Part shown: positions 3,496-34,442 of the stretch, piece after piece
Position numbering within the stretch: the stretch's first letter is position 1
Layout: the number at the start of each line of letters is the position of its first letter
Origin: Epithemia pelagica
Lineage: Eukaryota; Protista; Bacillariophyta
Direction of reading: 5' to 3'
DNA length: 64,000 nucleotides
NCBI GenBank assembly: GCA_946965045.2
Contig: OX337232.1
Span: 1,674,001 to 1,738,000, forward strand
Made by a program: the position numbers and the translations under genes
Notes under the pieces: model-generated
The model's input: the letters and a program-made list of their open reading frames with translations, nothing else
The model's database searches: none
What the model was told of the DNA's origin: nothing

Positions 3496-4242
3496 TTAGA
3501 ACTTGGCAATTATGTCAGCCATTCGTACTACACTGTACTCTTCACCATCAATTTGTACTTCGTTTCCCGCGAAGTCGCGGAATTTTACCATATCATCTAC
3601 ATCAACATCCATTGCCATGAGTTCTCCATTGCTTGCTCTACGGCCAGGTCCAACTTTGACTACAGTGCCTGTAGACGGGCGAGTTTCTGAAGTGGATGAT
3701 TTCGCGATGAGAATACCTCCCTCCGTCGCTCGCTCCTTCAAATCAACCTGGACCAAAACATTATCCGCTGTGACATCAACCGTGTCAAGCGTCAATTGAT
3801 CTCCTGAAAACTTGACCAAGATATCATCATCTCTTATCAGAGTGTGCTTCTCCCCAGATAGATCGATTTCTGTTCCGTCATACTTTCCATAAACCACTCG
3901 ATCGCCATTCGAGACTGGCATCTCAATCAAAATTCCGGAATCGACATGTGTTTTTCCTGGCCCAACTGAAACAACAAGGCCTTCCGTTTTCTCAATCTTG
4001 GCCTTCCCTGCCAAAAGAATCCCTCCATCTGTTTTCTCGATCGCTTCAGCGACTTTTACCAATATGAAATTGTTCAATGGTTTCACCTCTCCTTCAATCG
4101 TTCGGCCGTCCACGGTCATGGCTTTCAGCTCCGTCCTTGGAGACGAGATCCTATGAATAGAGAATGGGTATGCGCTGGGCAATGATGCCACTAGAAGGCA
4201 AAGAAGCCGCACAGCTCTCATCGTGATGGTATGAAACCTCAT
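3496..4242 (-). CDS. CPN20: Plastid co-chaperonin Cpn20 (two tandem GroES domains)
   Basis: Two GroES repeats (VKPLNNFILVK...TDGGILL...VVSVGPG and TEGGILI...VVKVGPG). Bipartite signal with AYP/FSI cleavage. Likely start ATG 4242 or 4221. Confidence 0.9.
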   Translation of the reverse strand: MRFHTITMRAVRLLCLLVASLPSAYPFSIHRISSPRTELKAMTVDGRTIEGEVKPLNNFILVKVAEAIEKTDGGILLAGKAKIEKTEGLVVSVGPGKTHVDSGILIEMPVSNGDRVVYGKYDGTEIDLSGEKHTLIRDDDILVKFSGDQLTLDTVDVTADNVLVQVDLKERATEGGILIAKSSTSETRPSTGTVVKVGPGRRASNGELMAMDVDVDDMVKFRDFAGNEVQIDGEEYSVVRMADIIAKF

Positions 4243-4582
4243 GGTCGGACAGCCCAGAGAACAATTACGGATCTTTGATGGGCAGACTGATGGGGGGGGG
4301 CATTGTATCAAATGTGAGAAAAAGAGGATATTGTGGGGCGGGTTCAGATAGATTTCAATGCATGGTTATACATAATTCTAACGGCTCATAGCCAAAAAAT
4401 CCAACTTGCTCAAGACGCAAAAAAGCGAAGACTGGGACAAACGTCAGACCATACGCAAGCTCCCCACCGCACACGACGTTCCAAGTGGAAGGAAGACAGG
4501 ATGGGGCAACGGGATCTTGAATTTGATCTCGTTTTTCTTGTGGACGCAGAATACGGATTACGGATTCCTCATTGTTGCAAAG

Positions 4583-5730
4583 ATGCGTTTCTGCGCCAAT
4601 CTTTCTTTTGTATCCTTGTTGTTGGCCGCGTTACTCTATGGAGGTGTAGCGGTTTCGCGAATTCAGATTGTGTCGCCATTACAGGCTTTGACAGTGTGGG
4701 ATCCAGAGGTAAACAAAGAGGAACCAACTTGGCGGAGTCGGTTTTTACCAAGGTACAAAGTTGGGTTGGAAGCCGAAGCGTCCGTCCGAAAAGAATACGA
4801 CAATAAGCGAAAGAAGTTAGCAGCAAAGGCAACTGCAGCAGCTGCAAAGGGGAAAAATTGGGCTGCCCGTGCTCAAGCAGCAGAGCGTGATCTTCAGCGA
4901 GCCGAAGATGCGTCTGTCGAAGCAGCATACGATCGAGCAGTCAAAGATTACGAAACGCAAAAGACGAGAGAAAAGCGGGTAACAAGTGTTCGCCACAATC
5001 GCAATCAGTATCAATTTGTTGGTCTTGTTCAGCCTTCCTCTGCCAAACAAAGTGGTTCTCCTATAACGTGGTACGCTCGCAAAAAACCATCGAAGGCCAA
5101 TTGGTCTATTCGACTTCTTCATGTGAACAGACCAGCTGTTATCAAGGATTTGTTCGAACATGGTAAAGTTGACTTGTTTGCTTCATACAGCAACACGGGG
5201 CGTGTTGATGAAACATCAGGGTTACCCGTTATCACCGGTGATTACAAGATACGAGAACGATCATGGAGGTACGCTTGATGATATAAGTCCCTGGCTCTTA
5301 TTATGTTATGGTCGAATCGGGTCTGACCTATTACTGTTTTGTCTTGTGTTGTCACAGAAATTGCTGGAATTTTTCTCCAAAGGTGGGTTTTCGGGTCGTG
5401 GTGTCTAGGATGTTGAATTTCGGGTTCCAGACTGCTCACACATAGGTTTGTGACTTTTGCAAATTTGTAATTATTTCTTCATGACAGCATTTCATAACTG
5501 ATTCTTCGGGCATGTATTGGCGGGAACGACGAGTACGTCCGGGGTTATACACTGACGGGAGAACTGTTTACGAATCGACGTATCGATATTCTGATGGCCG
5601 TAATGGAATGGACAAGAAATCAAGCTTCGACACCTTAATGAAAAGCTCAGCTATTCATCGGAAAACAAAAGATCGGATATTGAAACGTTTGAGACAAGAT
5701 GTCCCTGATCTCGTTCTTGAAGAGTACTAG
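4583..5730 (+). CDS. Hypothetical signal-peptide protein, 3 exons (4583-5268, 5358-5382, 5488-5730)
   Basis: Signal peptide MRFCANLSFVSLLLAALL. GT-AG introns 5269-5357 and 5383-5487 join the frame as RSWR/NCWNFSPK/HFITDSSGMYWRERR. Confidence 0.7.
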
Positions 5731-13974: not shown

Positions 13975-14313
13975 GTCCAGCCGAAACTCCAAAGTCTTTC
14001 TGATCAGGTAACTGTTAACTGTACGATATCGAATTTGCACTGTGTTCACAGCAACAATATTGATTCTTCGGAGGTAGTGGGGATCCTTGTCCGAACTCCC
14101 AACAATAACAATCGTCGATCTCTCTTGCAATTTGCAATGGGTGTGAACAAGCAGATAATATCTATAGGGCGTGCCGCCTACATGTCTTGTTCTTGTGTCT
14201 TGTTTCTCCCGTGATCGGGCCCAATGCCCAGTCCCAAGTCTTCACGGACCCCGGGCCCCGCCCGGGGGGCTTGCCATTCTACTGACCATTACAGACAAGA
14301 ACGAACCAATTCG

Positions 14314-14364
14314 AAATTGAAACCGCCAAGGCGGTATAGGACGGCTGAGTTCAGTATCCGTCGT
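14314..14364 (-). mobile_element. Helitron2/Helentron-type 3' terminus (copy X)
   Basis: 14314-14357 matches 46557-46600 at 43/44 nt. On the minus strand it reads ATACTGAACTCAGCCG, then hairpin ACCGCC-TT-GGCGGT, then TTCAATTT. Confidence 0.8.
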
Positions 14365-14965
14365 ACTCAGGAGCCACATACCCCCAAGCATGTAAGTGAG
14401 TCACGCGTGATCGCATGCACTGCGGGGCCCATTCTATCGACGCGCGAAAGCGCGATTTTGGTGCTCATGCTCACCAAAATTCCTTCCAAATCGCATCGCG
14501 CTTTCACGCAGGCCATTCTATCAAAACGCGATTTTGCGATTGCGCTCATTATACGCATGTGCGACCGGACCCGAAAATCGAAAGATAGCACGAGTAGCTT
14601 TTGCCCTAGTTACCCCTAGATAGTTTTTACAAACCATAGCTTTTGTTTATGCCATTGTCGCATTTACGCAAGATGAGGAACAAACCTTGCAAACAAGCAA
14701 CACCTCGAACATGGATCCATATCGAATGACAATGGGTGTACTAAAGAAGGCTACTTGGGCCACGGATTGGGTTCGTGTGACCTTGGAAAGACAAAGGCCT
14801 TCAAGGTCACGACAATGGTCATGCCTGTACATTTGCGAATATCGTGTTCATCGGCACTAATACCACTGTAAATCAACCCATATCCCACCTGGTATTATAC
14901 AGATACCACCAATCCCACAGCAGCACACATGTGTGCACAACGACAGTATGAGAAAACACATGGAA

Positions 14966-15460
14966 TCATGGATACAACACAAACATGACAACCACCTCTT
15001 GGCAAATGTCCCTAGTGTCTTGTGCGTGTGTGTGCACGTACCGTACTAAAGGTGGTCCAACTCGAAACAAAGGCATCAACACAAAGGCATCGGTAAAGTA
15101 ATCTGCTTCATAAAAGTCCACGCCAGCCAAGCACTTGGGATGATGATGTCCCAATCCGTTCATTACTGCGGCAAAGAGCAAGGTCGAGACCAAGAATCCG
15201 ACGGCGGCACTCAAAAAACGGCAGCAAAACTGGACCGGAAAGACCAATGCAAATAATGAACCACCCAGGAATGCAAGGTAATACCCAACCATGAACATGC
15301 ACCCCCGCCATAATGCAAATCCGTCGGACTGTGCGACAGTCAAGATAAGGATGACTTTTTCTTGCGAATGGTATCGGGTCGACGAGTACGCCGCCATTGC
15401 AAGGACGACGATGATCGACCAAACCCACACCATCCCAATCCACACGAGGAATTCCAACAT
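14966..15460 (-). CDS. Hypothetical multi-TM protein, possibly a cargo fragment
   Basis: 164-aa hydrophobic ORF with ATG start; no recognised motif. Confidence 0.35.
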   Translation of the reverse strand: MLEFLVWIGMVWVWSIIVVLAMAAYSSTRYHSQEKVILILTVAQSDGFALWRGCMFMVGYYLAFLGGSLFALVFPVQFCCRFLSAAVGFLVSTLLFAAVMNGLGHHHPKCLAGVDFYEADYFTDAFVLMPLFRVGPPLVRYVHTHAQDTRDICQEVVVMFVLYP

Positions 15461-16057
15461 CGTGTGTCGGGTCTGTGTTCGAATTCGATGCCAGCAATCT
15501 CAATCTTTTGAATGGCGGTGTTCCGGTTCCGGTTCCGTTCCCTGATGGTACAAATTGCTTCTACATCGCCGCGAACGTACAACCAAGTCCTGAAGAACCG
15601 CGGCCCAAATTCTTTCTCGTCTTTATTGGGATTGCGATTTTGTTGCTGCTTGTTGGATTGGTGGTCGGAAAATTGGACCTTCGGCGTACCTTGACGGCTG
15701 TTCCAGAAGAAACGAACCACAACAACAAGTGCTTTCTCCTCACGTCTCAGCAAGGAGGCCAATCACACGTGCCAAACAAGGGCGCTTCTTTGACACAAGC
15801 GGATCAAACCTTGGAAGACCTTGTTGCTCGTATGGAGACCGGCCAAACGTTCTCGACCGATATACTCCGGTCTCTCTACACGTCATTGTTGTCCGGCCTT
15901 GTGGATGATTCAGCAAGTCAAGACGGACTGGATATGGATTCAATGGTCCAAGATGCGATTGAATTTATTGATACCAACAAGGATGGTTCCATTGATACTT
16001 GGGAGATGGAGCATATTCAGCTCCCAGCCGGAAAATCAGGAAAGTTTTTGTTCGACA

Positions 16058-16823
16058 TGTTAGGATTCTCACCTTTAACTAGGTGGTGGTGGAATCTACA
16101 ACACATCGACTGATGCTAGTATTTTATGGCATCCGATGACATTTGTGTAAAAGTGAGAAAAGAATGACGGCATGCTCGCGGACCTTTAATTTTGGCCAAG
16201 GCATGCTCGCAATGCACGCGCTATCGGCGACCGCTCGGATATTGACTATGGCCCATCACGTGCGCGCCCAATATTCTCAAGCGCGCGCAATCAAGATCCG
16301 AGTGAGCACCTCCACGACTTACCTCAACGACCTAAGTAATCAAAGCACGAATCACGATCACGCGAGACCATATTTCCATTCCCACAATTCCAAGAATGCA
16401 ATCAACAACGCGCCAAGAAAACTACCTATATCACAACAAAGCAAGAGCTGTTGGCATTGGTATATGATATACAACTGCATATACTTTCAATACAACAATG
16501 CAGGTCTACTCCAACCATTTGAGGACCTATCACACCAGATCCATGGCCGTATACAAGAGCCAGGACCTCGACCTTCATCAAACACCTTAGTTAGTAATCA
16601 TCTCACAATCATTAATATCACCATTTTAACACTCATCTTAAGACTAACCTCTTATCAGTGGACCGACTGCCCCCACCCACGGCGGACTTCGACTTGCAAC
16701 TCTTCTCTGACCCGTGGAGGATTGTTGTATCGGTTGGTGATTCGATTGTCGGCTCAGCGAGCCTTTTACCTATCCTACCCAACTACCTATTACCCTTCTG
16801 AATTCTCAATGAGAGTTCTGTCA
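16058..16823 (+). repeat. 5' LTR of copia 1
   Basis: TGTTAGGATTC...GTTCTGTCA. I found only one difference from 20698-21463. Confidence 0.95.
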
Positions 16824-16843
16824 GATTAACAGTCTCAACGCTC
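16824..16843 (+). other. Primer-binding site complementary to a tRNA-Asn(GUU) D/anticodon arm
   Basis: GATTAACAGTCTCAACGCTC is the reverse complement of GAGCGTTGAGACTGTTAATC, and it starts immediately after the LTR. Confidence 0.65.
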
Positions 16844-17327
16844 ATTGCCCTGCAGTCGCATTGGAGATCATACTTACCCATCTACATTGAGTACAGATTG
16901 AGCTACACCAACAAACGAGAGTTAGAGGACAAAGCTACCCAACCCAACAACAGGGCCAGCCTGGCTAAGGCTAGGGTCATCAACCCTCTCCTATTCCAGG
17001 ACCTCAAGCTGGACCAGGACTTCGTGCAACTACCTTCCCAATACTCACCTGACCAGTACTTTGCTGAGGACTACGAGCAAGACGAGCAAGCTACCATTAT
17101 TCCTGACTCCCTGGTTCAACTCGATCACCGCAACGAGTCCGGAAGTGACCAAGGATAAGTATCTTTAAGTGGTTTCCACAACAAACCAGAGACAAAACCG
17201 AGTTCCGCACATCCGGGTTCCCAGCACAACACACATCCGGGTACTTACATACGTGGCACACACGTGGTACATCCGGGTTCAGATCACACCACACATTAAA
17301 TAAACAACGAACCAACCATATACTACC

Positions 17328-20300
17328 ATGGATCCAACATACCCCAAGACACCTTCTCTTCCTTCTGACGACTCAGTACCGCCTGACAAATCAGATACAC
17401 AAGTGTTCAATCACATCACCCAGCATCTATTTGAATGTGATGAGGAACGAGCTCAAGCCCTTCATCAATGGATAAAACATAGTGGTTTCGAACACATTCT
17501 GAATGTCATCGACTATCTTGCAGTCAATCCAGAAAAGAATATCAAGGACCTTGGACAATACAAGTATGGGAACAAGACGATGAACCTGAAGACGTATACA
17601 AGGCATCAAATGAAGATCCTAGCATATTGGTCACGAGAACAAACCTCAACCCTGCAGCAGTGTGATATATCCCGTTCAACCTGGTTGAACCTCACCAAGG
17701 CCGATTACGATCATTGGAGAATCAATGCAGACTTCACCAAGCTTTGCCTGAACCAAGGTTGGATTTCGTCATTTCGTTTAGCAAAAAGAGAGGTGTTACG
17801 TCTTAACAACTACATCTCCAATCTTTGTCTCGATGATTCATGGCACGGCACAACCTATCAGTTTCTTCTCCACTTTCAACACCAATTCCATCTTCTCGAC
17901 AATCTGGGATCAATGTTTGATCACATTCCTGGCCACTCCACTAGGATGACCTTCCTGATGAAAGCCGTTGAAAAGGTACCTGATTTACGACAAGTCAACA
18001 TCTTGTCTGGTGCAAAGACACTTTGTTATCAATCATATTTCCGTCTTCTCCTTGATGCCGCATATGATCATGACCAAGCAACTCGATCACCAAAGTCTAA
18101 CCAACGTAAGCATACCAAGCAACATGACTTTCAATATGATCAAGATTTTGATACCAACAATCCATCATTCAAAGAAATGCACGACAGGATTAAGAGAACT
18201 AACATGAAGACCAAGGATTCATCTTCGCTTCCAAAGATTAGTCTTCCAAGAAATCTGTGGAGTAAACTCACTGACAACAGTCGTCAAGTAATCATTGCGT
18301 ACAACAAGTCTACCCAGAATGCATCAACAATTGCATGCAAGGAACAGACGCATACTCTTGACATTGATCCAGAACCTGATCCTGACCCTGGTAGTAGTAC
18401 ACGGATTGACGACATAATTCAAGATGCTTCCAAAGACCGTCAAGACAATTTCTCTGATCTGATTACCCGGTTTGTTCCTCAAGTTGTGACCAATCTTGTT
18501 GTCAATCATCCAACATCTAATCTTGCTAATTTGGAATCCAATACCAAGACAACATCCATCCCTAATGATTGTCCCAAGAACAACAATTGTAAACAGAAAG
18601 TTCAGACATCTCGACATCTGCTCTCTCGCATGTCTACTTTCTCCGGCGACAATCACATGACTGGCTTTAATCATTGGCATCTTGATCCCATGCAAGATAC
18701 GGCACCTTCTTTGAGGACTGTTGAAAATGATGGTAATCCAAATGATGCGTTTGGGAAATATACCAATTGTGTTGTCTGTAACCCCAACCTTCTTTTGGAT
18801 TTACCTTACGATCATGGACCGGATACACCTTCCTTCTACACACCCCTCCTTGGAGAACACTTTTCCAAACCAAACCTCCAAGATCAGAATATGGCTGAGA
18901 ACCTTTATCAGACCGTTAAGAGGGCAACATACGTCGTGACCGTTTTGGGCCATATCCCTCTTGAGATCCTCAATGGTCGCCCACCCGGCATTACCCACCC
19001 TCTTTTCTTCCTTATCTCGGACAAGGCCCCCTACTTTACCGAATCATATGCCCTCTCCCACCGTCCCTACCGTCCCTACCCTCCCTCTTTTGTCACGACA
19101 CTTGGCTACTGGCTTGTTTTTGCCCCTCCTATTGGTGATACTTTGTCTCTGGACACTCAAACCCTTTGTTACTCTGCCATTCTTCATGATGCACCCACGC
19201 CACCCAGAACCTTTGTGTGGATACCTCTTCAGGGGAGAAATCGCTTCCAAGTGAACCCAACGGCAAGCAAGCTGACATTGTTCTCATTTCTAGCAAAGGT
19301 GAAGATCCATCCACGCAAATTCCAACGATCAAACATGATGACACTATTGGACAACCTTTCCTTGTTTATGATCCAGAGGAAAATGGGGAGCAACGACAAC
19401 CGTATAATGGGGAGCAACCACAACCGTGTCTTATAAGATGCGTCATTGATTTAGAACAAGATGCTCTCAAGCAAGAAGACTGTATCAAGTACACTTTCTG
19501 CAAATCCATTTCCGACATTGACAAGATAATTTCATACCGTCAACATATGGAATACATCAAACAGGACAACCAAGCACAGGAAACTGAAGATGACGTTTTT
19601 CAGTTCAGGGACGTTGTTGCAGATCAAGAACCGTCAAGTATTAGCAACAATCCTGACTACAAAAGAAGTCACTGTAATATACTTGTTGATTGGGAGACTG
19701 GGGAGATGGTCTATGAGCCTCCGTCACTCATGGTAAATGATGCCTATGCCAAGAAACATGACCTATTAAATGAACTTGGATGGAAACATCTCAAGCGTTT
19801 TGTCAAGACCAGTAAATGCCTTGTTCAAGCTGCCAAACAGCAGTCAAGAATCAAGCAAGTCTGTCGTTCCATCAAGTACAAGTTTGGTTATCAAGTTTCA
19901 ATGACAAATGAAGAATTAGTTGTTTTGTTAGACAAGCAACATGGTAAAAGAAAGTGGCACGACACTACTGAAGTTGAGCTCTTTCAGGCTTCACAGATCC
20001 AATCCCTCACAAAAGTCAAGGATTGCGTTCAAGCTCAGTTCAAGAGAAGGGAAATGATAAATGCATCACCAGAAGAGTATCACAAGAACAAGATTCAAAT
20101 CCATCTTGTAAAACATGATGATAGTTGCCCAGCACTTCTCATCACAGACGAGGTTGAGGCAATCTTTTTGTGTACTACTTCCATTCACAACTTTCATACA
20201 ACCACCTGTCTTGGGATTCTCAATGATATGGATATATGGGGAGCAAAAGTTGGAAATGCACACGACCTGGAAGCTTTATCTGGAGAGAAGATCTTGATAG

Positions 20301-20697
20301 TTGCAAGACAAGAACTCAAGGAATCAGGTCACATCTTGATTACGCACAAGGCCTCAAAGGGATTAAAATCTTCAGGAGCATGTCGGCGTGACTGTTTCTT
20401 TGACATCCCACTTGATATGGATTTGTCACCAACTAAAGCAGATCCCAATGTTTGGATGAAGAAGGCACCTGGGGAGCATAGCTCAAAGGGCACCGACAAG
20501 ACCTACCAACTGAAGAATGATGAACTGATTACTTATTGCCTGAGATATCCCTATGAGAGCGTCCGGGATACATTGTCAGTAAGCATTGGAAATTCTCGAA
20601 AGTATGGACCACGTTCAAGATCATATTCTTCTGGGGAGGAAACGTTCAGAAGCATGACAAGGAAAATAACAATCCTCACTCGACAAATTGTGGGGAG
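17328..20697 (+). pseudogene. Deleted gag-pol remnant (overlapping ORFs 17328-19436 and 19217-20722)
   Basis: Keeps Gag blocks (RMTFLMKAVEKVPDLR, CYQSYFRLLLDAAYDHDQAT) and partial pol (VDWETGE, KYKFGYQV, GLKSSGA). The protease DRGANGG, integrase core, RT YVDD and RNase H are absent. Confidence 0.85.
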
Positions 20698-21463
20698 TGT
20701 TAGGATTCTCACCTTTAACTAGGTGGTGGTGGAATCTACAACACATCGACTGATGCTAGTATTTTATGGCATCCGATGACATTTGTGTAAAAGTGAGAAA
20801 AGAATGACGGCATGCTCGCGGACCTTTAATTTTGGCCAAGGCATGCTCGCAATGCACGCGCTATCGGCGACCGCTCGGATATTGACTATGGCCCATCACG
20901 TGCGCGCCCAATATTCTCAAGCGCGCGCAATCAAGATCCGAGTGAGCACCTCCACGACTTACCTCAACGACCTAAGTAATCAAAGCACGAATCACAATCA
21001 CGCGAGACCATATTTCCATTCCCACAATTCCAAGAATGCAATCAACAACGCGCCAAGAAAACTACCTATATCACAACAAAGCAAGAGCTGTTGGCATTGG
21101 TATATGATATACAACTGCATATACTTTCAATACAACAATGCAGGTCTACTCCAACCATTTGAGGACCTATCACACCAGATCCATGGCCGTATACAAGAGC
21201 CAGGACCTCGACCTTCATCAAACACCTTAGTTAGTAATCATCTCACAATCATTAATATCACCATTTTAACACTCATCTTAAGACTAACCTCTTATCAGTG
21301 GACCGACTGCCCCCACCCACGGCGGACTTCGACTTGCAACTCTTCTCTGACCCGTGGAGGATTGTTGTATCGGTTGGTGATTCGATTGTCGGCTCAGCGA
21401 GCCTTTTACCTATCCTACCCAACTACCTATTACCCTTCTGAATTCTCAATGAGAGTTCTGTCA
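20698..21463 (+). repeat. 3' LTR of copia 1
   Basis: Follows the PPT and is followed by TSD CGACA. Confidence 0.95.
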
Positions 21464-23445
21464 CGACAATGTAGTGGCCTGCACCGGTGTTGCAACTGGC
21501 GCCGAGGGCAGTGAAGCCGCTCTGGATGATCTCTGTATCACGGCGGACAATGTGGTGGATTTTGTCAACTTGTTTTTTGGTGGTTCTTCGGTAGTCAGTC
21601 CCGAATTGGCCCAACACATTCAAGAGGAGAGTGGAGCCGATACTTGTTTTACACGGACGGAATTTGAGAACTTGTTCCAGTCATCCTTGTCTGCCAACAA
21701 CAACCAGACCTCCTTATTGTCGGGTGCGAGTGTGACACTGTCCATGAATCCGTTCTCACTGGTGTTTGGGATTGGAATGGCCATGATGGTGTTTGGTCTC
21801 TCCTAAGTGCTAGGTCAGCCACAGTCGAAGGATCTACTATGTTGAATCTAATTCAGAAGTAACCATGTTTTTGTTTGTCTTCATGTTCCTGCCGTACAAG
21901 TATTTTGAAAAAGTTGAGTATAGGTTTCCTTGTTGATGGATAAGAGGGTAATACCTTACATTCCAGCAATGTCCAAGTACGTCCTCGGCCTCATCCAATC
22001 TGCCCATGAATGCCTTCAAACACAAATAGTCACTATCATTGGCAAAAATCACAACATGATATTCATCGCTTTGAATGCCGGCACTACCATTGTCGTAGAC
22101 AGGGAGATGAAGGACTCGCCTCTACTAGATAGAGAGGTATTAGTGGTAGTGGATGAGCCCACATGAACTAGAGATTATGTGATGTTTGCAAAATTTCCCT
22201 GCTTTGAATGCGACATCATTACTCTAGTTCATAGCAAGGGAACCATGAATGGTTGGACTGGTTCCAAACTACTAAGCTCGCCAGAACTTATCTATCCCGC
22301 AAACATCCAAACGAGGGCGAAATCCTACGATTACTATTGATGAGGAAAGGGTAGCTCGAGATGCACCTTGCATTCGCTCGTGTCCCCATGACGATTCCAC
22401 TTCCACCGAATACGCGTGGAGTGGAGTCGCTACCAGTAGTCGCTAGACGATAGCGAATGGTAGCGATGTTTTTGCCCCGCACTTTTCTGTTCCCCAACCA
22501 AAACCACAAGAGAGAGGGATATCTACGCATTATCGCCGCCAAATTATGGGGGAATGAGAGAGAGAACATGGTCAGCATGATGGCGGCCAATGATTGATTT
22601 AGGATTGTTTTGCCATGGGCCAACCATGAAGAAACAACCACAAGGTCCTGCTGAGGAGGGTCGTTGACCATACGAACCGACCTCATATACTCCTCATCAT
22701 TTTGGATCATTGTTGCTAAAAGAAAAAGAAGGAGAATGATCGAGGCTCGTCTTGTCCTTTTTGCCATACCACCACATCTTGTTGTGATGCGGGTTCTTGT
22801 TTCACCACCACCTCTTAGGGTGACGCTGCAGCAACTGGTTCGGCTCGGTTTGGTTCACCACCATTCTTCGATTACGGGACGAGTAGTACTCTGGAAAGGA
22901 CCAGGTCAGGTCTGTGGAGTCCTTTCCTTGTGGTTTTTTGGCAACTCGTGGAGGATTCGCATCAAGGCTTTTTTGTTTTGGGCCGTGGTACCCGTTTGTT
23001 GCAAGCGATCCAACACAATGTTGCGCAGATTGCTGGACAAGGCTCGATCCAAGGCTTGCACGTGCAATTGTTCGACACCAAAGGTTTGAAACCACCAGGA
23101 CCAACCCAAGGGAGGATCATGGTTTGTACGAGTGTCTGTTTTGTGATTGTAGTACTTATTTGAATGGCAATTGCCTCGTCGTTTCCCACCCATGGCAGTA
23201 ATACTCCTCACCCACGATGACGACGCCAGTGTCACGGCCCGCACGACAGCCACCTGTGTCGCCGCACCAGTCGGTGCTTGCAGGCGAGACCAACATTGAA
23301 ACTGCACAAATTCACAGGGTGGCAATTGTCGCACCACTTGCGAGCGAGAAAGAAGAGTCGCTTTTGTACTGACATGGCTGCTATGGCTGATAGGAGGATT
23401 CTCGGACGAAAAGGACCAGGACAATGATCCTGTTACGGCATCCGT

Positions 23446-24228
23446 TGTTACAATTCTTTTTGAATCGTAGGGACATTGATGCTCGGTAGAGCAGACAATC
23501 AGGTAGGTCACCAACCGATACAAGCTTCTCAGGGTCAGAGAAGCAAGCAAGTCGAAGTCTATCAGAAGGATAGTCGGGACACAAAAGAAGATGTGATAAA
23601 TGGTGATATTGTTAGATTGTGTGTTGATTACTACAATAGGTCTACGTGAAATGTTCGGTCCTGCCAAGGGTCATGTATCATAGGTTCTTGGCGGCAACAG
23701 GTTTGGAATAGTTGGAGTCAATTCATGTGATGTATATGACATGTATATGTGGACGGATAACATATACAGGGTCAACAGCTCTTGCTTTGGGTTGGCATAG
23801 TTGTTTTCATGGCGCGCAGCTTGTTGACAATTTGGAGATTGTGGGAATGGAAATATGGTCTCGCGTGATCGTGTGTCGTGCTTGGGATACTTAGACCGTT
23901 GGGTCGGATAGATGCCGACAGCGCTCGGATGTTGCTTGGGCGCGCTCGATGATTTCGGGCGCGTACGCTTAGGGCGTTAGTATAATGTCCGAGCAACGGC
24001 CAAATTTACGTCCGTTGTAATACCGCACGACCCAGTTTAGTCTTGAGAGTGAGTTCGTCAATCTATTCTCACTTTTCATGATTTGCGAAGAAATATAGGT
24101 CGATATAGCGCGAAGCTAGGGAACATAGCTCGAAGCTAAATGGCATGATGCGATAGCACGAGGCTATGTGACATGGGGAATCGATGAGATGTAGAATCTA
24201 ACCACCATAGACGGTGAGAATTCTAACA
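23446..24228 (-). repeat. 3' LTR of copia 2
   Basis: Near-identical to 31047-31829; I found two differences. Confidence 0.95.
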
Positions 24229-27200
24229 CTCCCCACAACTCGTCGTTTCAGCCTTGTCATCATTGGATTTGTTGAGGTCTTGAACTTCTCCTTTCCAAAA
24301 CAACAATGGCTTGAGCATGGGCCAAATAGATACAAAATCCCAATGTTTGCTAAGGATATCGGCAGGGTTGGTCTTTCCATCTTTCCAGTAGAATGCAACA
24401 TACTTTGCTGCGATGGCTTCACGAACTCGGTGGTATGACAGAAGATGGTGTCTCTTGGATAGTATGGAATGAGGAACGGTTGCATTGAGCACAACAGATC
24501 TGTTATCTCCGTACATGTAACTTCGCTCTCGGATAGGTACTCCAAGGTAGCGGAGGGAATGTCGTAATTCTGTAATCTGATCTATTGCTGTCCTTGCAGC
24601 CACAAACTCGGATCCATAGGTAGCAGTTTCCACCGTGCTCTGCCTCTTGCTGTACCAGTCAATAGGTGTTCCGTTCAACAAATGTAGAACAGCAGTGACG
24701 GATTTACCAGTGACTATGTCATGCATGAGATTGGCATCAACATAATGAGTTGTGGTAACATAACGGCCAAGAGGTGTTGGGCAGTCTTCAGGAATACGTT
24801 CACTTGCATTCGAATAGACAGTGCGAGTCCAATCAAATTCTTGGGTAGGAAGACTTGAATAATCAGGCTCTCCAATCCTTAATCTGATTGCGCCTTCTGG
24901 GAGATGTGCAAGGTATCCATAGATACGCTTGGCTCTATCAAGATGTCCTTTCCTCGGAGCAGCACGAAAGCGTGATAGCGTCATTGTAGCGGTGAAGACG
25001 TCGAAACGACCAATAGTGATCACCCATTGGAGTTGTCCAATCAGAGTTTGGAAATGGCTAGTACCTTCTTCATCAAGGAGCTCAGAATCATCCAATTCAG
25101 GATGGTCTCCACCAATAAGAGGTGTTTTGGCTTTCTTGGGTTTCTCCTTGAAGATTCGTTCGAAAGTGTCCATCATCTTACCAATGTAGCGTCTTGGATC
25201 TGCTACTAATGTTCCATCAGAATCCTTGGTGTAACAACATCCCAAGTGGAAATCAATAGGTCCATCTCCTTTGAGTTTGAAGTTGTATTTCTCCTTCAGG
25301 ATCTTGCAGATATTCCCAGGATCAGTAGAAATAATGGCTAAGTCATCAACGTATACGGCAATGTATTCGTAACAGTCTTCTCCAGGTGCTTTCCTCATCC
25401 AGATATCCGGATCTGCTTTGCTTGGTGAAAATCCCATGTCTGTCAAAACATCGAATAAGACATCATGCCAGGGTGCGCCTGATGACTTCAATCCATAAAG
25501 TGCCTTGTATATAATCAGGATGTGACCTTCTAATTCCTTGAATTCAGGTCCTGCGACAATGAAAATTTTCTCCCCTGTCAAGGCTTCCAGATATGCGTTC
25601 CCAATATCTGCTCCCCATATTTCCAAGTCATTCAAAGTACCCAGGAATAAGGCAATGCGGAGGTTGCGAATGGAAACAACACCTGAATAGATTGTCTCAA
25701 CAGGTTCTTTTGTGAGATGTCCATCTGCGACAAGTCTTGCTTTATGTCGTCCATCATGTTTTACGTCAAAGACAAGATGTACACGTATCTTATGATATCC
25801 TTCAGGTGCATTGGATACTTTCCCTTTAATGAAGATGGCTTTCCCAAAATCCTTGAATGTCTTGTAGGACTGGATCTGTGACAATTCTAATTCTGTTGCA
25901 TCCTGCCACTTTGTGTTGCCATGTTGTTTATCAAGAGCGACAGCTTCCTCATAATTGCGTGGTACTTGGTATCCAAACTTATACTTGACGGAACGGTGAA
26001 CTTGTTTAATCCTTGACTGTTTGGCTGCTCGAATGAGACGTTTGCTTGTTTTGACGTAACGTTTCAAATGCTTCCATCCAGGTTTGTTGAGTAAATCATG
26101 TTTCTTTCCATAAATTGCTACAGTGATCGGATCATCATTGGCAATGAGTGATAAAGGTTCATAGGTAGTCTCCCCAGTTTCCCAATCAACAAGCAAATTA
26201 TATTTGCTCCCCTTGTAATCTGGATCAGTTGTGTTCAGTGGGCCTTGATGGGCAATGACGTCCCTGAACCTGAAAAGATTATCTCCAGAGGTTTGAGCTT
26301 GGTTATCTCGTTCGATATACTCCATGAGTTGATTATAGGATATCATCTCATCAACATCAGAATTTGTCTTTCGGTAGATGTACTTGACACGTTCTTCCTG
26401 TTTCGTTGCTTCTTCATTAAGATCAATGACTCGTTTGATGACACGTGCACGGTGTCGCTCCCCATTTTCTTCTGTGTCGCATAGGAATGTGCGTCCTATC
26501 ATGTCGTCAAAATCGATCGTGGGCATTGGTTTGGATGGATCTTCACTATCACTGCGAATGAAGACAGTGTCAGCTTGCTTATCATTGTCATCCTTCTCAG
26601 ACGAATCCTCCCCTGAAGGTCGATCCACACGTAGGTTAGGTGTAGTGGATTCAACACGGCAAACGGCAGAACGGTAGATGATCTGGTTATCCTGGGTGAG
26701 AATCTTCCAAGTAAAAGAATCACCAACGTTGTGAGCAAAACCAACCCAGTGGCCAAGTTTCTCATCAGAAGAAGATGGATATGAACCGGAATTGGGTTCA
26801 GCGGGGTCGACACGGTAGTAAACCTCATCCCAGAAAGGAAAGAACAAGAGATGAGTAATGTCGGGTGGGCGTCCGGAGAGAGCCTCAAGAGGAGTGCGAC
26901 CGGAATGGGTGGGTGATGATGTATGGTTCAATAAGTCACAGACATACTCAAGGCAAAGAAGCCAGGTGTTGGCAGGGCAACCAGTGGCATTCATGAGAGC
27001 GTTGGTCATACGTTTAACGGTCTGGTAACGGTTTTCAGCCTTATTCTGGTGTTGATGATAAGGTTCGGATCGATACTCCCCAATAAGCAAAGTGCAAAGA
27101 ATGTCTTTGACCTTTTGAGAGATGAGAGATGAACCACCATCACTGATAAGAGTCTCCATGGCACCACGAAAACGGATGTTGTCCTGAAGAGTATTGACAA

Positions 27201-29910
27201 ACTGTTTGGTTGACTTGATCCCATAGATATCAGTAACCAGAGTATCTCAACCAACAAAGATTTGTGCAACTTTACCACCATGGTCAACAGCAGGGGTGTC
27301 GGAGAAAACCGAGTCAGTAGCAACGGGTTCATGGCGTCGAGGTATATTAAGGACCGGATTGCGAGCCTTGAAATGTTTCTTGAGGGTGTCGTGGTCAAAA
27401 GTAATGCTACCATTACGTGTAGTGTGCTTGAACGTATCGGCAATAACATCTTCAGATTACCAACCAAAGAATGGACGGAACTTCTTCCAGTCATACGCTT
27501 CCTGGTAACGACGGTGGACAGAGGCATGAAGTGTAGGATCATTACCTTCTGCGTCAGCATAGATAGAAAAGAAGGGTGCGTCGTCAGGTCCATGATCGTA
27601 TGGGAGATCCAAAAGGAGATTGAGGTTACAAACAACACGATCAGTGTACTCCCCATAGTTGTCATATGGATGGTTCGACATACTACCATCAGTCTTGACG
27701 TGTTTCCAATCAGGATCATTGTCAGAGGGTGTGGGAGAATACGAATGGTCCAGAACACCAGGATCCCATGTGTCGGGTGACGTGAAGATGATCTGAGGTA
27801 AGGTATCCATGTCATCGTCGCTGGGGATACCCAAGGAGTGGATGTAGGCTAACCCATCCTTGATGTGAAGGGGTATAGCACGACCATCAAGTGTAGTGAT
27901 GCGTTGTTTACCATCAACTTTAACAGATCGTTCATCAACAGCAAGTCCGAAATGCTCGAATTGACCAGGAGCATGGATAGATAAGCCCTTTCCATAATAA
28001 GCATATTCATTGAAGATGCCAACAATAGGTCCATCATTGGTCTCAAACTTTGCGGCACATGTGACGACAGGAAGTCCAGTAAGTTCATGGTGATCAATAC
28101 CCACAATAGTGATATGGCGGCCAGTCTTAGAGAGAATGCGCATGTCAGAACCAGCAAGTCCTCCATTAGCACCACGGTCAATCAATTGATTTCCTGGTAA
28201 AGTAGATTTCCTGGAAAACAAATAGCGTGGAACATGTCCTGCTTGTTTATGCATGTTGGCTTTGAAAGTAACCTTCTTGCTCGTCTTGGACTTGGCGTTA
28301 GAAAGAACACTAGTCAGGTCAGTTGCCGGGTGATTGATATCAGTCGTCATGGCTTGGTTGATAAATTGTGTAACCGGATCTGAATCATCTGGATGCTCAG
28401 GGACTACGCCAGGTGAGTCGTCATCAGATGCAACTTGGTTGGGGTCAGGATCAGGTTCCGGATCAATGTCGAGGGCATGTGTTTGCACTTTCCTCGGTGT
28501 TGTTGATGAAGGTGTTTGAATCATTTTGTTATACTCAATGATCAACTTGCGATCTTCTTCAGAAAGTTTGAACCATAGGTCACGCGGTAGACTAACCTTG
28601 GACGAAGAGGATGGAGATTCAGATGTCGCTGTGGTGTTGTGGACATGATACTCCATATCATCTTGTGAGGTTATGTCAGCATCTGTATCTTGGCCATATA
28701 GTGATTCATGTTGTTTGACATGTCGACGGCAACTATGAACAGATGACTGGGTTGCTTGATCATGGTCATAAGCTGCGTCTAGAAGGAGACGGAAGTATGA
28801 TTGATAGCAAAGGGATTTTGCACCGGATTTGGTGTTCACCACATTATCCAAGATCTTGACTCGGCGGAGATCAGGTACCTTTTCTACAGCTTGCATGAGG
28901 AAGGTCATCCTGGTATGATCAGGGATGCAATCAGACAATGTCACTAGATTGTCTAGCAAACGTAGCTGCTCTTGAAAGTGTAGAAGAAATTGACGTGTTG
29001 TTCCGCGCCATGTGTCGTCAAGACGTAGATTGGAAATGTAGTTGGTTAAACGGAGGACTTCTTGCTTTGCTAGGTCGGATTCGGTATGCAAAGAGTGTAA
29101 CTTCTGCAATACGGCACGCGCATCTTCATCATGTTCATGTTCACGTACATAGGCTCGACCTTGGTCAGTCTGAATGATACGGACAAGAACAGAGTAAAGA
29201 AATACTTGTTGCTCTTGAAAAAGTTCTTCGGCATACTCATCATCATGGGGTGGTGTGTATTTGAAATTCAGAACGTTGGATAGGCCTTGAGCCTTAGCTG
29301 TAGTCTTGAATACACGCCAGAATGAATCGTAGTATCGTTCATCCTTGAATACCTCATATGCAGTTGCGTCGCGCTTAGTTCCCTTTCTGAATGCGGTAAG
29401 GTCTTGTTGAGATTGGGATGCGGCAGTAACTGTGCTGACAGATTTCACAGATGACGGTGACTTCATTGGCGAGACTGGGACTTGGCTAGGTGGTCCCTTA
29501 GAGAAATCTGTGTTGATCCTCCAAGTGTTGAACTCTTTCCTCGTTAGATTCATCCAGTCGCTATTGGATAGCTCGTCTTGAATTTCATTGGTCTTGTATA
29601 TGGCCCAATAAGCCAAGAGCTTGATCTGCTGTCTTGTGGGGCCTTGTAGATCATGTGTCTGTTTGTTGACCTTGTATTGTGTCAGTTCCTTCATGGATTC
29701 CTCGGTATTAGTTTGCATATACGAGATAACATGGGTAATGTTCTCAAAACCATGGTATTTCATCCACTTCATTAAGAAGTCGGCCCTTTCTTTGGTAAAG
29801 AATTGGCAGACAGTAAATATGATGTGGTCGAATAGGTCTGTGTCCGAGATATTGTCTTGGTTATCTTCTCCCTTAGGAGTCGTAGGTGTCTTGGGTGATT
29901 GAGAATCCAT
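24223..29910 (-). pseudogene. Single-frame gag-pol with two premature stops
   Basis: Protease LIDRGANGG, integrase SEPYHQHQNKAENRYQTVK, RT YIAVYVDDL, RNase H HYVDANL and ATYGSEF. In-frame TAA at 27457-27459 and TGA at 27247-27249; the frame is open between them. Confidence 0.92.
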
Positions 29911-30230
29911 GGTGTTATTTGGTTGGTTCGATGTTTATTTAATGTGCGGTGTGATGTGGTTTATTTAATGTGTGATGTGATGTGAACCCGGATGTACCAC
30001 GTGTGCCACGTATGTACCACGTATGTGATACCCGGATGTGTGTTGTGATGTGCGACTCCTGGAAATTTCCGTTGATTCCGACAAATTTTCGCCGAGTTTC
30101 AACAAATTTTCGCCGAATTTTCGCGATTTGACGGGAATGTGTGGCGTGTTGTGCGACCAAGGGTACCCGGATGTGCGTTGAGTTTAAGTCTTGGAAAGGT
30201 TTTGAGAGGACGGGAGTTAACTATGAGTAA

Positions 30231-31010
30231 TTAAGCTTCGGTCTCCGAATCCCCACTCTCTTCCGAATAATCAGAGTCGTTTCCAGGCTCAGATGGGGCA
30301 GCACAAGCAACAGAAGAAGGGGTATCACCTTCAGCCAGGTGGTTCTCGACCTCGGTACGCAAAGGGAAGATAGTTGCACGATGGTCCTCGATGGTATGGA
30401 CCTCGTGGATGTAGGCAACGTAGTTATCTAGGCGTACAACGTTAGGAGGCAGAGGGCAAGTCGTCGCGTTCACGACGTGGATGGTATTGTAGTATCCAGT
30501 TGGGCGCTTGAAGGTTAGGAAGCGGAGGTGGACAGTACGGATGGGGTTGCCCGAGAGGGCGGCCAAGATGAGGCGACGCCTCGGAGAACGATGAAGTTGG
30601 TCGTTCAGACGGTCAATGTCTTCTTGGTCGACGATGTGGGTCACCGATTGGAACTGACGTTCGATCTGGGTCTCCCCACGGATGATCTCGGGATCGAAGG
30701 TCGAACAAGTTGGTTGACGGAAGTACTTGATATGATCAGCAATCAACCGGGTGGTACGACGGGATCGAGAAGGGACGAGCCGACAAGGCGGACTCGGGGG
30801 CCGAAGCAACGGCGCAGGGATCGGAGCGTGAGGCTGGGTTGGAGTCTCGAATGGGTTGCTGTTGGAACTGTCGACGGAGATGTTGACCGATGTGTTGGCT
30901 GCCTTCGGCGTCGGCACCAGTTCCTGCTGCACCAGGGTATCGGGCTGCCCGGGATGCAGTTTGGCTCGATAGATCTGTCGTACAGGAGTGATAAGCTCGT
31001 TAGTATCCAT
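30231..31010 (-). CDS. Extra 259-aa ORF between PBS and gag of copia 2, function unknown
   Basis: ATG 36 nt downstream of the LTR, sense to gag-pol, uninterrupted. Confidence 0.6.
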   Translation of the reverse strand: MDTNELITPVRQIYRAKLHPGQPDTLVQQELVPTPKAANTSVNISVDSSNSNPFETPTQPHAPIPAPLLRPPSPPCRLVPSRSRRTTRLIADHIKYFRQPTCSTFDPEIIRGETQIERQFQSVTHIVDQEDIDRLNDQLHRSPRRRLILAALSGNPIRTVHLRFLTFKRPTGYYNTIHVVNATTCPLPPNVVRLDNYVAYIHEVHTIEDHRATIFPLRTEVENHLAEGDTPSSVACAAPSEPGNDSDYSEESGDSETEA

Positions 31011-31026
31011 GAAACCACAAGGAAAT

Positions 31027-31046
31027 AAGCTTTGAGACTGTTAATC
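31027..31046 (-). other. Primer-binding site of copia 2 (tRNA-Asn anticodon-arm complement)
   Basis: The plus strand reads TGAGACTGTTAATC directly against the LTR; 15 nt are identical to the PBS of copia 1. Confidence 0.65.
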
Positions 31047-31829
31047 TGTTACAATTCTTTTTGAATCGTAGGGACATTGATGCTCGGTAGAGCAGACAAT
31101 CAGGTAGGTCACCAACCGATACAAGCTTCTCAGGGTCAGAGAAGCAAGCAAGTCGAAGTCTATCAGAAGGATAGTCGGGACACAAAAGAAGATGTGATAA
31201 ATGGTGATATTGTTAGATTGTGTGTTGATTACTACGATAGGTCTACGTGAAATGTTCGGTCCTGCCAAGGGTCATGTATCATAGGTTCTTGGCGGCAACA
31301 GGTTTGGAATAGTTGGAGTCAATTCATGTGATGTATATGACATGTATATGTGGACGGATAACATATACAGGGTCAACAGCTCTTGCTTTGGGTTGGCATA
31401 GTTGTTTTCATGGCGCGCAGCTTGTTGACAATTTGGAGATTGTGGGAATGGAAATATGGTCTCGCGTGATCGTGTGTCGTGCTTGGGATACTTAGACCGT
31501 TGGGTCGGATAGATGCCGACAGCGCTCGGATGTTGCTTGGGCGCGCTCGATGATTTCGGGCGCGTACGCTTAGGGCGTTAGTATAATGTCCGAGCAACGG
31601 CCAAATTTACGTCCGTTGTAATACCGCACGACCCAGTTTAGTCTTGAGAGTGAGTTCGTCAATCTATTCTCACTTTTCATGATTTGCGAAGAAATATAGG
31701 TCGATATAGCGCGAAGCTAGGGAACATAGCTCGAAGCTAGATGGCATGATGCGATAGCACGAGGCTATGTGACATGGGGAATCGATGAGATGTAGAATCT
31801 AACCACCATAGACGGTGAGAATTCTAACA
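31047..31829 (-). repeat. 5' LTR of copia 2
   Basis: Minus strand TGTTAGAATTC...TGTAACA. A central block is shared with the copia 1 LTR. Confidence 0.95.
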
Positions 31830-32922
31830 TCCGTTTCGTCTCCCCGCCCACGATCTGTACTGCTCCTGCTTGTCCTGCGGCTGCTGCTTGTCGGCAAATG
31901 ATGCGGCCAGGTTCCGACATCATAACCAATGGTAAAGGCAGCCGATGGACACGAGGTCAAATACGAGGCTGTGGAAGAAACAATCCTTGAGTTAACGGAA
32001 TGGGGCTTGTCGTCGTCCTCCTCTAAATCACGTTCTGGATGTGCATGTGTTGGAGGTCGTTTCTTGGCATAATTCCAAACATAGAAGCGACTAGCAGTAC
32101 TCGAGGAACGATTCTCTGGAATGTCCTGTTGGTTCTTCTTTTTCTTCTTGCTGGTGTGCTGTTGTCGCTGGTGATGGTAGTTGTTTGGATGCAACCCTCC
32201 GTGCTTGTTTCCGTGATTGTTGCATTCGTAGATTGGGCACAGCCTCGGGCACGACCATTTTTCGTCCAGTCGTGGTCGTTGTGGCCGCTCGTCAATAATG
32301 ACGCTGTGTGACTCAACGTTTGTCGCATGGCGGAAGGAGAAGAACGACCACGCGATCTTCGACTGCCACCACAGCTCCACGGTATCCACTCGAAGCAGCA
32401 GCAGCACCGCCACCATTGTCGCCGACAACAGAAGCTGTGTCGTCGTCTTCTGACAGATACTTCCTTGATGCTTCAAAACCACCCGTCTGATTGCCGTGTT
32501 TCAATTTCCGGGTCGTCCATCATTCCTTGACCCGAATTGAATCTTTCTCCGTCGTTCCTCCGTTGAGATCTTTATCTTTCCATCGTTATCTTTCTCCATT
32601 GTTGATATTCTTGTCACGACTTTCCCTCATCACTCATCAAACTGGAAGACATTGCAAATGTAGTTGTAGCTCGATCAAACTATCCAACTCATTGCCGCCC
32701 TTTTCAACCTTCACGGTACACTCCATTCTGAGGCATGCTTGATGGTCGGAGGAGTGCTAGCACCTTTCGTTGGAGGTGCACTGCGGCTTTACTGTTCATG
32801 GTGATGGTGGTGCTATTAGCTATTATGCATTGGTGCGATCGTGAGCCGGGAGCTCGTAACGTCATTCAACGTCAAATTACAGGCATCGACAGAAAAATGG
32901 CTTGTAGAGGTCATAGATTGAT

Positions 32923-33212
32923 GGTTGGGAGTCTTACATTATTACTAACGATACGTCAAGGGTGAGTCGCCACTCACATTTTACGCGGTTGGAGGTGCAC
33001 CTCCAAATCATACCATGACTGACCATTAAAATAATCATTGCTATATCATTGCCATATATATTTAACCGTTTTATCAACCGCCATGTTTGCTCAATTGTAC
33101 TTTTTACTCTATTGTCCGTCCGTTTTCGGTACAGCTGGTCTTTCTGGAAATTCCCACCCCAGACCCCAAGCCTTACGGCCCACCCGTCCCGTTCATACTG
33201 AACTCAGACGAA
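32923..33212 (-). mobile_element. Helentron 5'-terminal region (copy A)
   Basis: High identity to the 50350-50786 and 53233-53669 repeats over about 32970-33212, weaker further left. On the minus strand it begins TT-CGTCTGAGTTCAGTAT. Confidence 0.75.
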
Positions 33213-33320
33213 TACTCCAACCTACATCTCATGACAGACAACGGACAAAGTCATCCGATGGTATCCCCGTATCTGTATCTTGGTATCTTGGATCTTGGGG
33301 TCCTTATCTTCTGCGGAACC

Positions 33321-34442
33321 ATGGCATTCCAAGCCCCGTCAAGAGTCCTGGTGGCAGGAGCAGGAGTGATTGGTCTGCGAACAGCGATAGAACTTGCGAG
33401 GAGAAATGTAGAGGTTGTTCTTCGCGCACCCCATGATCCTGTCCAAGAGTCATGTTCTGTGGTTGCTGGTGGTTATTGGATGCCGTTTCACTGCGATGGT
33501 CCTAGCGTTGAGAAATGGGCTTTGGAAACCCTGGATGAATTGCACCATTTCGCGCAATCTCAGTCAGACCTCGTTGAAATTGTGCCTGCTGTTATTTTCT
33601 ACCGTGGGCGCCCTCAGGAAGCTCCATCTTGGACAAAACATCCTCGGCTCGATTTCCAGCATTTAACTGTTGAAATGATGGCATGGCAGAATGAGGTCCA
33701 CAGACTTAAGTTACCTCCTCTAAATGAGCTGAAAGAGGCGGGATACCTCCATTCGTGGTTTTTCCGCTCTGTCGTCGTCAATACACCAGCGATGCTGAAT
33801 CATTTTCTCAACGAACTCACTTCAGTTCACGGCGCCGATGTGGATGTGCAGAGTGGAACAACGTTTCAGTCCTTGGAACACTTGCAAGATTCAGCCAGCG
33901 AGATGGATTGTCAAATGGTCATCAATTGTACTGGCTTAGGGGCCCGGGAGGTTGTACCCGATCCCGATGTTGTGCCCGCACGAGGTGTTTTGTTGCATTT
34001 CGACCGAGATGCTTGCGTGCGGCGCTCTCCCGTGGCTCACGGTTCGTATGGACCAAATTCTAATGACGTTGTAATATCCGTATTTGAAGAACCGTGGGCG
34101 AGTGAAACTCAGCCAGCATACCTTATCCCTCGAGGGTCGTCCATCGTGGTTGGTGGAACCTACCTCGAAGGTGACGAAGAAACCTTGGTTCGTGACGCCG
34201 AACGAAAGAAGATTTTAAAGAACGCAGAAATGCTTGGTATCGACCTGGACTCAGTAGCTATCAAACATGAGTCGGTTGGATTTCGACCGTACCGGTCACC
34301 CGTTCGCTGTGAGTTTGATAAGAGTGGCACAGTGAGTGATCGCATTCCAATCTTCCATAGCTACGGATACGGGGGCAGTGGATGGACTGTTGACGTGGGT
34401 GCGGCCCGTGAATGCGCCGATAGAGTACTTGGTCGTCAATAG
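33321..34442 (+). CDS. DAO: D-amino-acid / D-aspartate oxidase family flavoprotein
   Basis: VLVAGAGVIG FAD motif, INCTGLGA, SVGFRPYR, HSYGYGGSGWT. Likely start ATG 33321. Confidence 0.88.
   Translation: MAFQAPSRVLVAGAGVIGLRTAIELARRNVEVVLRAPHDPVQESCSVVAGGYWMPFHCDGPSVEKWALETLDELHHFAQSQSDLVEIVPAVIFYRGRPQEAPSWTKHPRLDFQHLTVEMMAWQNEVHRLKLPPLNELKEAGYLHSWFFRSVVVNTPAMLNHFLNELTSVHGADVDVQSGTTFQSLEHLQDSASEMDCQMVINCTGLGAREVVPDPDVVPARGVLLHFDRDACVRRSPVAHGSYGPNSNDVVISVFEEPWASETQPAYLIPRGSSIVVGGTYLEGDEETLVRDAERKKILKNAEMLGIDLDSVAIKHESVGFRPYRSPVRCEFDKSGTVSDRIPIFHSYGYGGSGWTVDVGAARECADRVLGRQ

Follow-up and report, generated by a model that had tools for sequence, protein, structure and literature searches.

The 64-kb stretch of Epithemia pelagica DNA analysed here (the window) contains an LRR gene on the minus strand, with its start probably near 13977, and a DAO-family oxidoreductase gene on the plus strand, starting at 33321. 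The DNA between them, positions 14314-33212, had been described in the original prediction as one gene-carrying Helentron inflated by two nested copia insertions. Our analysis leads to a related reading, to which we give a probability of about 0.9: this span would be a single 5099-bp non-autonomous transposon of the Helitron2 (HLE2) type, holding pieces of host genes and later split by two copia-type long terminal repeat (LTR) retrotransposons, called LTR-RT1 and LTR-RT2 below. The parts of the element, its ends and the two retrotransposons are laid out as follows (TSD, target site duplication; ORF, open reading frame).

14314-16057, minus strand: Helitron segment 1 (3' part, bases 1-1744 of the reconstruction), colinear with sister copies
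21469-23445, minus strand: Helitron segment 2 (bases 1745-3721 of the reconstruction), placed by sister alignment
31835-33212, minus strand: Helitron segment 3 (5' part, bases 3722-5099 of the reconstruction), placed by sister alignment; includes the start of a chimeric ORF
14314-14366, minus strand: Helitron2 3' terminus (right terminal sequence), with hairpin CCGCC/GGCGG at 14323-14334, asymmetric inverted repeat at 14342-14357 and conserved end ...GGTTTCAAT
32923-33212, minus strand: Helitron2 5' terminus (left terminal sequence, 290 bp common to autonomous partners), with inverted repeat at 33195-33210 and a predicted hairpin at sense bases 3-28
16058-21463, plus strand: LTR-RT1, copia-related, 5406 bp; LTRs at 16058-16823 and 20698-21463; TSD CGACA
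23446-31829, minus strand: LTR-RT2, Ty1/copia type, 8384 bp; LTRs at 23446-24228 and 31047-31829; TSD TCCGT

Upon self-BLAST of the window, the 53-bp 3' end at 14314-14366 was found again at 46557-46609 (94% identity), and the 290-bp 5' end at 32923-33212 was found again at 50497-50789 and 53380-53669 (95%). All family ends of the window (the sites at 14314, 33212, 46557, 50497 and 53380) lie on one strand, and no further family terminus was detected between 14314 and 33212. This agrees with the original prediction of a 3' end and a 5' end on the same strand, with no terminus in between. When both retrotransposons and one 5-bp TSD each were taken out, leaving 14314-16057 joined to 21469-23445 and 31835-33212, the 18.9-kb span was reduced to 5099 bp, which reproduces exactly the length given earlier. 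The sense strand of this element is the minus strand of the window.

Three genomic loci (C2 stands for contig 2, and so on) match the reconstruction in one continuous alignment, from base 2-3 through to base 5099.

C2:6246764-6251868: sister copy, 98.5% identical to the reconstruction
C13:42900-47986: sister copy, 97.6% identical
C2:5599649-5604655: sister copy, 97.3% identical

Such end-to-end colinearity with sisters, at 97-98.5%, indicates that the two ends belong to one element, as had been proposed. Additional copies, carrying insertions of their own, likewise align with the reconstruction. The sister elements that the original prediction left to a genome search therefore do exist: the 5.1-kb subfamily comprises 11 copies in the 60.5-Mb genome, the window copy included, and the mean pairwise divergence among the 7 copies that were aligned is 1.39%. 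Three of the sisters, as well as the donor loci and the complete autonomous copies described below, were compared by coordinates only. The sisters are uninterrupted, to the base, at the positions of LTR-RT1 and LTR-RT2, and thus provide exact empty sites for both retrotransposon insertions.

Segmental duplication was considered for these copies and rejected, as their flanks differ, except for three composite copies on contig 2. In front of each of these three sisters lie the initial 619 bp of an autonomous-type member, a second 5' end included. The 619-bp piece (L061:5867-6485, i.e. G000 C2:6251866-6252484) is 99% identical to L012/L018; the same composite structure is present at C2:1224095-1224990 and C2:5374502-5375397, and the junction is common to all three. 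The composite, which runs from the outer 5' end through the 619 bp and the whole inner element to the inner 3' end, appears to be a 5.7-kb unit that was transposed or duplicated in one piece. It follows the same logic as the 7.1-kb unit found at 46557-53669 of the window.

Termini and autonomous partners

Genome-wide, 5' ends of the family number 40 or more, and 3' ends 34-35. The 3' terminus is common to 34 genomic 3' ends at 94-100% identity, and a 33-nt pattern describing the 3' end gave 34 genome matches, versus none for the reversed control. At about 28 loci, 5' and 3' ends are paired in a fixed orientation, 4-16 kb apart.

The sense strand starts with TTCGTCTGAGTTCAGTAT... and ends with ...ATACTGAACTCAG-CCGTCCTATA-CCGCCTTGGCGG-TTTCAAT. 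A repeat at the 5' end, CGTCTGAGTTCAGTAT, begins at nucleotide 3 and pairs at 15 of 16 positions (13 of them contiguous) with ATACTGAACTCAGCCG, which ends 26 nt short of the 3' end; this inverted repeat is kept in all aligned copies. The 3' repeat block sits just upstream of the hairpin CCGCC-TT-GGCGG, itself 7 nt from the conserved end ...TTTCAAT. At the 5' end, a DNA hairpin is predicted over nucleotides 3-28 (-8.6 kcal/mol, z = -3.27 versus shuffles). All 28 of the 5' junctions examined read R|TTCGTC, and TTTCAAT was found at 29 of the 30 3' junctions, the next base being mostly T or C. No TSD was seen; one composite junction has a 3-nt ambiguity. The flanks, a purine on the 5' side of TT and in most cases T or C following AAT, are compatible with a T^T target.

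Several pairs of family ends, 12-13 kb apart, enclose a Helitron_like_N domain and are of the autonomous type:

C4:639627-652208: both ends and Helitron_like_N
C9:1476400-1488998: both ends and Helitron_like_N
C11:690221-702794: both ends and Helitron_like_N
C17:310584-323911: both ends and Helitron_like_N
C4:2146039-2157683: both ends and Helitron_like_N

Within each of them, Helitron_like_N is read in the direction from the 290-bp end towards the 53-bp end, as the termini predict. The ORFs of C4:639627-652208 and C9:1476400-1488998 match DUF6570 (1e-19), Helitron_like_N (4e-17) and PIF1 (1e-18). At C17:319 kb the complete Rep-helicase corresponds to an open frame of about 1690 aa. Autonomous members are about 12.6 kb long and 98.8-99.3% identical among themselves. 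With the 5.1-kb element they have only the terminal 290 bp and 53 bp in common, and no Rep or helicase protein similarity below E=2 was detected inside that element, in line with the earlier statement that it lacks a transposase.

Canonical Helitron1 elements have 5'-TC...CTRR-3' ends, a hairpin at the 3' end only, and an A^T target. This class was rejected here on account of the ends TTCGTC...TTTCAAT, the inverted repeats and the 5' hairpin; a terminal inverted repeat (TIR) transposon was rejected too, the inverted repeat being subterminal at the 3' end and TSDs being absent. Judged by its termini and by the domains of its partners, the element is of the Helitron2 (HLE2) type. As in this type, it begins with T at the 5' end, shows no TSD and has an inverted repeat that starts 2 nt from the 5' end and whose subterminal 3' partner is located just before a GC hairpin; the predicted 5' hairpin overlaps the repeat. 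Also in common are an autonomous partner with DUF6570, Rep and PIF1 helicase, and non-autonomous derivatives that share termini only. It differs by its host, a diatom-like stramenopile. Helitron2 hallmarks were published by Bao & Jurka 2013 (PMC3627910), FoHeli of Fusarium being another known system (PMC5148889), and DUF6570 has been reported as a marker of the HLE2 clade (HELIANO survey, PMC11417382).

The name Helentron used in the original prediction does not hold in the strict sense. Helentrons and their non-autonomous HINE/DINE-1 derivatives belong to the same broad HLE2 group, with a similar terminal logic and many non-autonomous copies, but they are defined by an apurinic/apyrimidinic (AP) endonuclease domain (Thomas et al. 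2014, PMC4067079), which is absent from the autonomous partners found here. The helicase ORF of these partners stops about 430 bp ahead of the 3' terminus, and of the 68 genome matches to Exo_endo_phos (PF03372), none lies in an autonomous copy; the family is therefore not a strict Helentron.

Captured host-gene pieces

The interior of the 5.1-kb element holds the following pieces.

15469-16056, plus strand: fragment of an EF-hand/single-pass membrane gene, part 1, cut by LTR-RT1 near codon 194 (tblastn with P0001/P0002)
21469-21806, plus strand: EF-hand gene fragment, part 2, codons ~195-306 (tblastn with P0001/P0002)
32482-31835, minus strand: start part of a chimeric 465-codon ORF, in Helitron segment 3
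22700-23445, minus strand: distal part of the chimeric ORF (C-terminal half of a glycosyltransferase-like host gene), with a 1-nt deletion and a stop codon in this copy
14966-15460, minus strand: 164-codon hydrophobic ORF in "fragment A" (~0.8 kb), intact in most copies

As judged from these pieces and their relatives, the interior is put together from truncated copies of host genes, a mosaic that would have arisen once before multiplying to at least 11 copies. The EF-hand ORF has 306 codons and lies on the antisense strand of the element. A sub-threshold EF-hand match was the only one obtained with Pfam on the cargo ORFs. The 306-aa product is 65% identical to residues 151-463 of the 463-aa protein P0002, and the closest genomic relative of the ORF, at C17:92.3-93.3 kb, is 83% identical at the nucleotide level. 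The corresponding host family has at least 30 loci with 40-79% protein identity, clustered on contigs 17 and 18 and lying outside Helitron termini; the clusters are at G000 C17:92-214 kb and C18:2.56-2.79 Mb (coordinates only). Its proteins cross the membrane once, have a single EF-hand-like loop and end in a hydrophobic tail, and a search of 5.8 billion proteins returned ENA sequences only (11 matches), apparently from this organism or close relatives. DNA homology of the captured copy ends about 11 nt before its first codon; since the host frames extend further upstream, the copy is 5'-truncated and lacks between 15 and 150 codons, according to the paralogue with which it is compared.

The second piece had been described as a gene of about 600 codons. 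It is instead, in intact sisters, a Helitron-host chimera of 465 codons, which in the window copy is split by LTR-RT2 and frameshifted. Codons 1-92 are Helitron 5'-region sequence, common to other subfamilies at C3:4.07 Mb and C9:3.15 Mb, and residues 93-457 are 74% identical to residues 353-707 of the 754-aa host protein P0013. The sole Pfam domain of P0013, Rhamno_transf (residues 124-182), is outside the captured part. A 783-aa open frame is present at the glycosyltransferase-like host locus, C17:105.7-106.8 kb. For fragment A, relatives 78-95% identical were found at C11:1.818 Mb, C1:53.6 kb and C1:1.012 Mb, with 71-86% protein identity and shifting frames. Of the "host-like ORFs" originally announced, host-gene origin is thus retained for the EF-hand and glycosyltransferase-like pieces, which are truncated fragments, not whole genes. 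The "transmembrane protein" does correspond to a hydrophobic 164-codon ORF, but its origin from a host gene is uncertain, as the frame is not kept at related loci.

The transposon also qualifies as Pack-type, a part of the original name that we keep: it has no transposase, carries the termini of an autonomous partner, is homologous in its interior to longer host genes outside, and exists in 11 copies with the same cargo. It resembles the gene-fragment Helitrons of maize and bat and the Pack-MULEs in lacking transposase, in its mosaic of truncated host-gene pieces in both orientations, in its element-host chimeric ORF, and in its amplification after capture followed by neutral evolution. Maize and bat Helitrons are, however, canonical Helitron1 and Pack-MULEs are Mutator-like, whereas the carrier here is HLE2, with only 11 copies. 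A further difference is that both identified donors here are close together: on contig 17, some 13 kb separate the nearest host copies of the two pieces (92-93 kb and 105.7-106.8 kb), which sit on one ENA contig. This proximity would suggest that both pieces were picked up locally by an ancestral Helitron2 resident there. No family terminus was found near these contig-17 loci by the genome-wide terminus pattern match, and no internal terminus remnants, the signature of read-through capture, were found between the cargo pieces. Parental copies of the cargo, sought as the original prediction proposed, are represented by longer host relatives on contig 17, but just 79-83% identical at the nucleotide level.

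Nested insertions and rival explanations

Both retrotransposons have LTRs with TG at the start and CA at the end, and both are flanked by 5-bp TSDs. The LTRs of LTR-RT1 measure 766 bp and are 99.87% identical (1 mismatch); those of LTR-RT2 measure about 783 bp and are 99.6% identical. LTR-RT2 encodes an RVT_2 reverse transcriptase (Pfam, 3.5e-25) with YVDD. The ORFs of LTR-RT1 gave no Pfam match, even at E=5, but are 52-55% identical, at the protein level, to those of LTR-RT2. Both elements are therefore placed in the copia type, this identity being the sole ground for LTR-RT1. Pfam gave no integrase or protease match for either element. The reverse transcriptase of LTR-RT1 is truncated ahead of YVDD, and its catalytic part and the RNase H region are gone. 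LTR-RT1 is a young copia element and probably a non-autonomous deletion derivative, which must have been mobilised in trans. LTR pairs have diverged by 0.13% (LTR-RT1) and 0.38% (LTR-RT2), versus 1.39% among the 5.1-kb Helitron copies, which makes the retrotransposons about 4-10 times younger than the burst of Helitron copies, as their nested position demands. Each broke one cargo ORF, the EF-hand ORF for LTR-RT1 and the chimeric ORF for LTR-RT2; two broken ORFs had been announced, and tblastn places both breaks at the retrotransposon sites.

Nested transposons are present in 8 of the 11 copies, with about 10 insertions in some 56 kb of subfamily sequence. The copia families of the window were compared with the elements nested in sisters and are not the same. 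Those seen elsewhere include a 7.1-kb LTR element with 173-bp terminal repeats, unlike the window copias, and an 8.5-kb insert resembling a long interspersed nuclear element (LINE), with a 2063-aa frame and an AP-endonuclease match. There are also two miniature inverted-repeat transposable elements (MITEs) of 590 bp (L068:5763-6352) and 836 bp (L069:974-1809), whose perfect terminal inverted repeats of 30-36 bp mark them as MITE-like DNA transposons; they are of two different families. The endonuclease match in the 8.5-kb insert, to Exo_endo_phos, is at C2:1216068-1216760 in a sister copy (G000, coordinates only). Frames of the same length, 2063 aa, are present at C3:4220030 and C18:35979, pointing to a young family of LINE-like elements.

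Such a density of insertions, together with the fact that both LTR retrotransposons of the 64-kb window sit in the 5.1-kb element, could mean that retroelements are actively targeted to Helitron sequence or chromatin. We consider this improbable. The nested elements belong to unrelated classes (copia, the 173-bp-LTR element, the LINE-like element with its AP endonuclease, and the two TIR MITEs), which is more readily explained by neutral DNA passively tolerating insertions than by one integrase targeting it, and the insertion positions are scattered, so that relaxed selection fits better than the preference of a single integrase. Insertions would accumulate in the cargo because it is neutral DNA.

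Measured among seven copies against the majority state, the ratio of non-synonymous to synonymous substitution rates (dN/dS), each value resting on 15-50 changes, comes to 0.63 in the EF-hand ORF, 1.14 in the chimera and 0.60 in the hydrophobic ORF. The chimera is open over 470-471 aa in 8 of 11 copies, and the EF-hand ORF over 326 aa in 7 of 11. These open frames, and the value of 0.63, might be taken as a sign that the captured ORFs, the chimera especially, are expressed and functional, either as new proteins or by giving rise to small RNAs directed against the parent genes. We regard this, too, as improbable. The numbers of changes are small, the chimera ratio is above 1, and disruptive insertions are present in most copies. 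With about 0.7% of change since the ancestor, neutral ORFs of such a length would mostly stay open, and frames open in 7-8 of 11 copies are what such a divergence would leave. The cargo seems to evolve roughly neutrally, and the dispensability claimed for it in the original prediction is upheld by dN/dS of 0.6-1.1 among copies and by the nested transposons in 8 of 11.

The same intact ORFs could alternatively be accessory genes of the element itself, the contig-17 genes being derived from it, a direction of transfer with which the restriction of the EF-hand family to ENA sequences would also agree. This is very improbable: the host proteins are longer, with N-terminal regions and a Pfam domain missing from the element. 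The EF-hand family has at least 30 members diverged to 40-79% amino acid identity, clustered and with no family termini nearby; autonomous partners are without the cargo sequences, and divergence among copies is near-neutral. Finally, that the two termini are independent fragments with resident single-copy host genes between them, the case named at the outset as fatal to the prediction, has in its favour only the large 18.9-kb span and is excluded, as the entire interior is colinear at 97-98.5% in 10 other loci with different flanks.

Proposed history and significance

The host-gene mosaic inside a Helitron2 would have been assembled once, from an EF-hand fragment, the C-terminal half of a glycosyltransferase-like gene placed in frame with 92 Helitron codons, and a 0.8-kb piece of uncertain origin. 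As only the terminal 290 + 53 bp are common with autonomous members, the 5.1-kb element is likely to have been mobilised in trans by the 12.6-kb DUF6570-Rep-PIF1 members: Rep would nick the 5' end, the strand would be displaced, and transfer would stop at the 3' hairpin. After amplification to at least 11 copies, one of which would have inserted into the LRR-DAO divergent promoter region of about 0.45 kb, two copia-type insertions would have brought the window copy to 18.9 kb.

Four points weigh against this account. First, trans transposition and the rolling-circle steps are drawn from the family and from established Helitron biology. Second, an empty site of the Helitron, with the two flanks joined at a gap of 0-8 nt, is absent from the assembly (predicted on the plus strand as ...CCAATTCG + 2-4 A + TACTCC...), and we infer the exact end bases and the T^T target. 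Third, the cargo is no more than 79-83% identical to its nearest host relatives at the nucleotide level; the actual donors may have diverged or disappeared. Fourth, transfer from host to element was not observed directly, the argument for this direction being based on truncation and on the size of the family.

The Helitron 5' end lies 108 bp upstream of the DAO start codon, and the divergent LRR and DAO start codons were about 0.45 kb apart before the insertion. Their shared promoter region (13977-14313 and 33213-33321) is now split by the 18.9 kb of transposon DNA. For annotation, this means that the three ORFs of the span should not be called host genes, and that the LRR-DAO interval was originally about 0.45 kb.

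Transposon nesting and gene-fragment capture are well known, and the locus is a clean but ordinary case of both. In the literature searched, no description of Helitron gene capture in diatoms was found. The analysis provides a fully resolved nested-transposon structure in a diatom-like genome. It also adds a second subfamily with gene capture to a Helitron2 family that is young and probably still active. With its sisters, its composites with two 5' ends and its nested insertions with exact empty sites, this family is natural material for the study of HLE2 termination. We think it unlikely, though worth stating, that the full scenario of local capture is correct, in which an ancestral Helitron2 near the contig-17 genes took up both pieces and fused 92 of its codons to a host tail, giving the chimera still open in 8 of 11 copies. 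If it were, and if the chimera or its small RNAs were expressed, this would be a case in diatoms of exon shuffling driven by HLE2 or of epigenetic cross-talk with the parent genes.

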